Shown: in pieces, positions 20,348 through 20,516 of the stretch
Position numbering within the stretch: the stretch's first letter is position 1
Layout of the letters: each line of letters opens with the position of its first letter
NCBI RefSeq assembly: GCF_016433145.1
Contig: NC_058133.1
Location: 65,302,055 to 65,366,054 of the forward strand
DNA from: Gracilinanus agilis
Lineage: Eukaryota
DNA: 64,000 nt
Direction: 5' to 3'
The notes under the pieces: model-generated
The model's database searches: none
Told to the model about the DNA's origin: nothing
The model's input: only the letters and a program-made list of their open reading frames with translations
Made by a program: the position numbers and the translations under genes

Positions 20348-20516
20348 GTTGGTTTTAAGGGGTGAGGCAAGAGGTTCTGGACTCGATGAGTTTCCACCGA
20401 AATGTCGGAGAAGTCAGGCCAGAGCACAAAAGCAAAGGATGGGAAAACAAAGTACACAACACTCAGTCTATTTAACACTTACAAGGGAAAATCACTAGAA
20501 ACTCAGAAAACTACAG
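20348..20516 (+). CDS. PRRC2C: PRRC2C exon 2 (5'UTR 20348-20401; CDS 20402-20516, start of BAT2_N domain)
   Basis: Pyrimidine tract then gttgaag| acceptor; ATG 20402; MSEKSGQ...ETQKTT; donor CAG|gtaagt; phase 1. Confidence 0.95.
20386..20475 (+). other. Overlapping upstream ORF, 29 aa ([29 protein letters not shown]), out of frame with PRRC2C
   Basis: ATG 16 nt upstream of the main ATG in weak context (ctcgATGa); TAA at 20473-20475 inside the CDS. The ORF is seen directly; its translation is not shown. Confidence 0.75.

Follow-up and report, generated by a model that had tools for sequence, protein, structure and literature searches.

A conserved poor-context upstream start codon beside the PRRC2C initiation codon that probably tunes PRRC2C output

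A weak upstream start codon, placed immediately before the main initiation codon, probably tunes the amount of PRRC2C, as judged from its conservation. PRRC2 proteins, whose role as regulators of leaky scanning was recognized only recently, control mRNAs that bear upstream open reading frames (uORFs), such as those of ATF4 and RAF1, and are essential in combination. In the window, by which we mean the whole 64,000-nucleotide stretch of Gracilinanus agilis contig NC_058133.1 analyzed here, the upstream ATG lies at 20386 and the main ATG at 20402 on the forward strand, and an upstream ATG with T at -3 and A at +4, located 7-17 nt before the main ATG, is found in all 16 PRRC2-family sequences that we compared. 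We consider it rather likely that this conserved, poor-context upstream AUG makes PRRC2C output sensitive to the stringency of start codon selection, and that it is a feedback and cross-regulation device shared by the PRRC2 family, of the type known for eIF1, eIF5 and BZW1/2. Autoregulation of PRRC2C through its own leader is plausible on this analysis. The core of the idea, an overlapping uORF combined with autoregulation, has already been published as a suggestion (PMC11534336); what the sequence comparison adds is that the poor context is conserved across paralogue types.

The upstream ATG resides in an exon at 20348..20516 of the forward strand, which comprises the last ~54 nt of the 5' leader, codons 1-38 and one extra base. 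The exon is bordered by a polypyrimidine tract followed by AG on one side and by the donor ACAG|gtaagt on the other, and cross-species similarity starts at its acceptor. There are two candidates for the acceptor, 20347|20348 and an alternative at 20359|20360, and because ATG 20386 is 3' of both, it would be within the mature leader in either case. The final G of the exon, at 20516, opens a Val codon that is split between exons and completed at 26872, the first base of the next PRRC2C exon (26872..27050, forward strand), and more PRRC2C exons are found further along the window. The main ORF starts with the PRRC2C-type BAT2_N N-terminus, and the Pfam domain PF07001 (BAT2_N) was recognized on every relative found: the exon is the first coding one in an orthologue of PRRC2C, whose N-terminus differs from that of the human protein. 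Twenty sequencing runs from eight studies, whose type we guessed to be RNA, hold ~0.52-0.56 of the sampled words of 20300-20560, a share that fits runs containing the exon alone.

Exon 1 was sought in the window and could not be placed, the only trace being the edge of a CpG-rich stretch at 1-300. That stretch is 56% G+C with a CpG observed/expected ratio of 0.84, resembles the edge of a CpG island, and contains a donor-like cgg|gtaggt at 173/174 as well as several ATGs. The probable place of exon 1 is the window start or just 5' of it, which would make intron 1 ~20 kb long, and there may be additional upstream AUGs in exon 1 or in the rest of the leader.

A first-pass annotation of this DNA had drawn attention to three ATGs of weak, medium and strong context, in three different frames around the PRRC2C start, and re-reading of the sequence bore out that description of the window. 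ATG 20386 (T at -3, A at +4) opens an overlapping ORF of 29 codons (20386..20475, forward strand) that reads in frame 2 with respect to the main ORF and whose stop, at 20473-20475, places its end 71 nt past the main ATG. The main ATG, which begins the coding part of the exon (20402..20516, forward strand), has G at -3 and T at +4, an intermediate context. ATG 20439, made by the Asp-Gly codons GAT GGG, has the optimal A at -3 and G at +4 and opens an out-of-frame ORF of 19 codons (20439..20498, forward strand; stop 20496-20498). With offsets of -16, 0 and +37, the three ATGs occupy three frames. The upstream 'ATGA' also forms a TGA stop in the main frame (20387..20389, forward strand), 15 nt before the start codon. 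Base composition predicts approximately one ATG in a leader piece of ~54 nt, and likewise one that is out of frame within 100 bases of the coding start, and the three-ATG layout alone is no more than chance expectation. The upstream ATG stands above chance because it is conserved across loci, a support that the third ATG lacks.

Relatives were gathered by a word search with the 40-residue ORF of the exon and by profile searches, the hits being short ORFs on genomic contigs, and the loci were grouped by sequence alone, not by taxon. The hits formed a PRRC2C-type group, a large PRRC2A-like group (MSERSGQTAKGK[DE]GKTKY...), a mammal-type PRRC2A group and a divergent cluster, P0086; a PRRC2B-type exon was not found in the profile searches or the metagenome scan. 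DNA was compared for 12 clusters and for three loci from the metagenome scan, i.e., 15 loci besides the window, and the resulting 16 sequences consist of 11 of PRRC2C type (including the window), four PRRC2A-like and one divergent homologue. The mammal-type clusters P0014, P0017 and P0048, and the PRRC2A-type clusters P0075-P0085, were left out of the DNA comparison. The divergent PRRC2 homologue (L025:554-573, also L026-L030) encodes the protein MSDRSAVTNKGKDGKSKY....

Across these sequences, the upstream ATG is at -16 in 12 of the 16, at -10 in L011, L015 and L019, and at -17 in L025. The first-pass annotation had allowed that the upstream ATG might be absent or unconserved outside this lineage, and the alignment speaks against that, as both the ATG and its weak context are kept throughout. 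The surroundings of the main ATG are almost as constant: T is at +4 in every sequence, and G is at -3 in 15 of 16, the exception being A in L025. In the 13 sequences that were aligned, 'ATGA', the main -3 G and the main +4 T are invariant, and 'ATGA' is also found in L025, which has two upstream ATGs, one at -17 in poor context (12 codons) and one at -7 (4 codons), both opening ORFs that overlap the main ATG.

The frame and extent of the upstream ORF are another matter. Conservation of the frame, the other property of the upstream ATG that the first-pass annotation had singled out for comparison, does not hold, for L025 uses a different frame and three related PRRC2C-type loci (L011:978-990, L015:228-240 and L019:1273-1285) have no overlap at all, a 6-nt deletion having left them with a two-codon uORF, ATG AAC TGA, that stops 1 nt before the main ATG. 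The upstream ORF is out of frame and overlaps the main ATG in the window, overlaps it in 12 of the 15 relatives, and has a length of 29, 26, 12, 8, 4 or 2 codons. Since neither length nor frame is conserved, selection would act on the start site and its weak context, not on the peptide. We rejected a conserved upstream-ORF peptide for the same variation in length and frame, and third positions are not clearly more conserved in the overlapped codons, with 6 of 23 versus 2 of 15. The three loci with the two-codon uORF display a differing regime at the conserved upstream ATG, either termination and re-initiation or something close to a 'start-stop', and re-initiation there could soften the effect of the upstream start.

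Conservation is not confined to the ATG. It covers the proximal leader from -22 to -1 (20380..20401, forward strand), which contains the upstream ATG and in which 16 of 22 columns are invariant among the 11 PRRC2C-type sequences, versus 9 of 39 third codon positions (Fisher p = 3e-4, overstated because the sequences are related). When the paralogues are included, the figures are 10 of 22 versus 4 of 39 (p = 0.003, overstated for the same reason). Identity among the PRRC2C-type groups is 0.79-0.92 in -22..-1 versus 0.54-0.69 at third codon positions, and between PRRC2C-type and PRRC2A-like sequences it is 0.55-0.73 versus 0.36-0.44. In the distal leader (-42..-23), only 1 of 20 columns is invariant. 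At the level of sequence, and despite the kinship of the loci, the conservation of the proximal leader is clear and sharply localized. Might the ATGs nevertheless have arisen by chance in a conserved exon, the leader simply evolving slowly beside a conserved coding start? About half of animal mRNAs have upstream ATGs (PMC10123092), and our sample is small and made up of related sequences. However, slow evolution beside the coding start does not account for a proximal 22 nt that is more conserved than the adjacent synonymous sites while the distal leader is not, nor for a feature common to paralogues whose leaders otherwise differ, and we consider this explanation highly improbable. RNA structure was rejected as the cause of the leader conservation: the RNAalifold consensus is -4.2 kcal/mol with little covariation. 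The single-sequence fold of the leader region is no better than that of shuffles (z = +0.55). Rfam gave no match at E <= 1 in 20200-20650 and none at the gathering score beside 20371-20448.

It could also be that the -22..-1 block is kept for some reason other than a uORF, and that the ATG is a passenger within it. Neither the 'ACT' at -21..-19 nor the last base of the TGA varies any more than the ATG itself, and three such reasons can be envisaged: the in-frame TGA could block N-terminal extensions from upstream near-cognate starts, there could be a site for protein binding or m6A (DRACH) just 5' of the ATG, or there could be an exonic splicing signal near the acceptor. The m6A candidate gains from the fact that all 11 PRRC2C-type loci (the window at 20380-20384, L001, L011-L017, L019 and L033) read [AG]GACT, which fits DRACH, and from the report of PRRC2A as an m6A reader, which is cited in PMC9945437. 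Yet the PRRC2A-like loci have TACT, which is not DRACH, and still keep the ATG and its context, and L025 shares little of the block but has T-C-C-ATGA at -17. Two clusters of fish type, P0020 and P0062, are read in frame through the position of the stop, with a Gln-Trp there that would be compatible with a retained ATG. Moreover, overlapping uORFs are reported to be highly translated in human cells (PMC11534336). We therefore regard a passenger ATG as unlikely, and prefer to see the upstream start codon as the element that is maintained. Two observations on the block may be added. In P0020 and P0062 the in-frame N-terminal extension runs through the leader (...QTQW[VI]SSEM...), the main-frame TGA being lost as far as the translated sequence tells, and an upstream ATG kept there would have G at +4. 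The [AG]GACT motif 5' of the upstream ATG would make a methylation-dependent choice of start possible, although that is pure speculation.

If the upstream ATG is maintained, what is the role of the third? The first-pass annotation proposed that the three AUGs, one weak, one medium and one strong and each in a frame of its own, form a band-pass, in which PRRC2C output would be maximal at intermediate stringency, with too little leak losing ribosomes to the upstream ORF and too much losing them to the strong downstream decoy. It had itself cautioned that the third AUG might be a by-product of Asp-Gly codons, and that caution proved well placed: ATG 20439 is probably incidental to Asp-Gly coding, as it follows the choice of codon 13 and is lost with GAC or Glu. 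The +37 ATG is missing in five of 16 sequences, L011 and L015 having GAC, and L022, L031 and L032 having Glu (GAA), which also disposes of the synonymous constraint that had been envisaged at GAT GGx. Among the 13 aligned sequences, 10 have GAT as codon 13, 2 have GAC and 1 has GAA; L025 has GAT. Most of the PRRC2A-like clusters have Lys-Glu-Gly at the codon-13 site, where an ATG is impossible. Nor do the three different frames persist across relatives, because the -17 ATG of L025 is in the frame of the +37 ATG. P0048, a mammal-like cluster with a frame-shifted product, gives a hint of an upstream ATG at -17 that shares its frame with the +37 ATG; should this hold for mammals, the overlapping uORF would have the +37 ATG as an internal Met.

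Several facts can be cited in favor of the band-pass. All three ATGs are present in the window with the contexts ascribed to them, the product of leak past one start and capture at the next, (1 - f1) x f2, could in principle pass through a maximum, and downstream out-of-frame AUGs in non-poor context are held to make a start 'obligatory' (PMC8892498). In addition, none of the compared loci lacks an out-of-frame ATG with A at -3 in the interval from +37 to +52. The ATG at +52 is made by Tyr-Ala codons, shares the frame of the +37 ATG and is found in 14 of 16 sequences, but it is absent in the window, and in L025. With choices of ~50:50 at the Asp and Tyr codons, at least one such ATG would be expected in ~75% of lineages. 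The mechanism also fails at the decoy: once a ribosome has passed over the main AUG it can no longer yield full-length PRRC2C, so that a decoy cannot lower the output of the main ORF, and can only prevent an N-truncated product, which is the sense of 'obligatory' in Ivanov et al. (PMC8892498). Exon 3 offers another out-of-frame ATG at 26884-26886, arising from conserved Arg-His-Gly codons and having G at -3 and at +4, before the next in-frame Met at 26925. In the sequences compared, the +37 ATG is neither conserved nor the sole sink for leaked ribosomes, and with neither the third AUG conserved nor the frame and overlap of the upstream ORF fixed, we judge the three-AUG band-pass very unlikely as a selected design. 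The +37 AUG would at most be one of several out-of-frame sinks that prevent N-truncated PRRC2C from being made by leaked ribosomes.

How, then, would the upstream start codon tune PRRC2C output? Closely spaced AUGs can compete directly, and the 7-17 nt spacing may allow the upstream and main starts to do so. A minority of scanning 43S complexes would initiate at the upstream start, continue translating beyond the main AUG and be lost to PRRC2C synthesis, and the remaining 43S complexes would reach the main AUG, with its intermediate context of G at -3 and U at +4. PRRC2C output would then be approximately (1 - f_up) x f_main, where f_up, the capture upstream, is expected to be modest and would set a ceiling, and f_main, the capture at the main AUG, would be sub-maximal. 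A modest f_up is expected because the upstream AUG falls under the published definition of 'poor', which is a pyrimidine at -3 together with a non-G at +4 (Ivanov 2022, PMC8892498). Since output would be the product of escape from the upstream start and capture at the main one, it would be sensitive to start codon stringency and to leaky-scanning capacity, and through the upstream AUG PRRC2 synthesis would be coupled to global stringency as set by eIF1, eIF5, eIF3 and eIF4G2.

The first-pass annotation had invoked a role of PRRC2 proteins in leaky scanning, and this is borne out by the literature for human PRRC2A/B/C, which promote leaky scanning at the starts of uORFs, overlapping uORFs and main ORFs (Bohlen 2023, PMC10123092); the same activity is assumed for the orthologue in the window. 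Because PRRC2A/B/C set leaky-scanning capacity, the element most likely provides the PRRC2 family with a common means of feedback and cross-regulation. The sign of the loop depends on which start codon dominates. More PRRC2 would lower f_up and so raise output, a positive feedback, and would also lower f_main and so reduce output, a negative feedback. The upstream AUG by itself predicts positive feedback by PRRC2, and the sign of the loop as a whole is something that we infer. The PRRC2 effect is larger in strong contexts, and effects on uORF and main ORF oppose each other on one mRNA (PMC10123092). Single PRRC2 knock-outs lead to compensatory upregulation of the remaining paralogues, with translational control among the possible causes (bioRxiv 10.64898/2026.02.24.707808). 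We favor a net negative, homeostatic sign because PRRC2 acts more on better contexts and because paralogues rise upon loss, and the net loop is thus probably negative, operating through the main AUG.

Could the circuit be older than PRRC2C? It is possible, although we hold this only tentatively, that the poor-context overlapping upstream start is ancestral to the vertebrate PRRC2 family, predating the split of PRRC2A and PRRC2C, and forms part of a circuit that holds total leaky-scanning capacity constant. Such an ancestral circuit would explain both the rise of paralogues after a single loss and the rise in PRRC2 translation upon perturbation of eIF3: among eIF3 knock-downs, the translation efficiency of PRRC2A is raised in three, and that of PRRC2B and PRRC2C in two of them (PMC11534336). 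If PRRC2 mRNAs do sense stringency through a weak upstream AUG, PRRC2 would be a further self-limiting node of start codon selection, beside eIF1, eIF5 and BZW1/2, and paralogue compensation in the knock-outs would have a simple cause. The conservation described here turns what had been a one-line remark into a testable element of ~22 nt and a single codon, and with the three-AUG reading removed, experiments need not center on the third AUG.

The closest known system is the human PRRC2 family itself. All human PRRC2 mRNAs contain an overlapping uORF that is translated at a high level, for which autoregulation was suggested (Herrmannova et al., eLife 2024, PMC11534336), and the family, the element and the suggested regulation are the same as those considered here. 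That suggestion is one sentence based on HeLa ribosome profiling, without sequence analysis or test, and our search of the literature found no paper with a test of PRRC2 autoregulation, a study of how the element is conserved or a proposal of a three-AUG band-pass. In contrast, the present comparison starts from a non-human orthologue and finds the upstream AUG to be common to PRRC2C-type and PRRC2A-like sequences and to a divergent homologue, the mammalian state being taken from PMC11534336 alone. The PRRC2C arrangement is also reminiscent of uORF3 of ATF4 and of synthetic overlapping-uORF reporters (PMC10123092), in which the upstream ORF likewise overlaps out of frame and the output of the main ORF measures the leak past the upstream AUG. 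In those systems PRRC2 dependence is largest with strong-context overlapping uORFs, whereas the upstream AUG of PRRC2C is weak, and may depend little on PRRC2.

That eIF1, eIF5 and BZW1/2 autoregulate by way of suboptimal starts, a point to which the first-pass annotation had appealed, is established (Ivanov 2010; Loughran 2012; PMC5823381). With eIF5 (Loughran 2012) and the Hox mRNAs (PMC8892498), PRRC2C shares a conserved poor-context upstream AUG that reports global start codon stringency. More eIF5 leads to more use of the uORF and consequently to less eIF5, a negative feedback, but with PRRC2 the upstream AUG should be used less, and by itself this AUG would give positive feedback; and, unlike in eIF5 and Hox mRNAs, the uORF of PRRC2C overlaps or abuts the main AUG at a distance of 7-17 nt. 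With eIF1 and BZW1/BZW2 (Ivanov 2010; Loughran 2018, PMC5823381), a factor that promotes skipping of start codons limits its own synthesis through a suboptimal main AUG, and the likeness is that the main AUG of PRRC2C has neither the A at -3 nor the G at +4 that would be optimal. Unlike theirs, it has a purine at -3 and is intermediate, the poor-context codon being the upstream one. The main AUG of PRRC2C is thus not a poor-context start in the sense of eIF1 and BZW, having G at -3, but it is a suboptimal start that is conserved across all 16 sequences.
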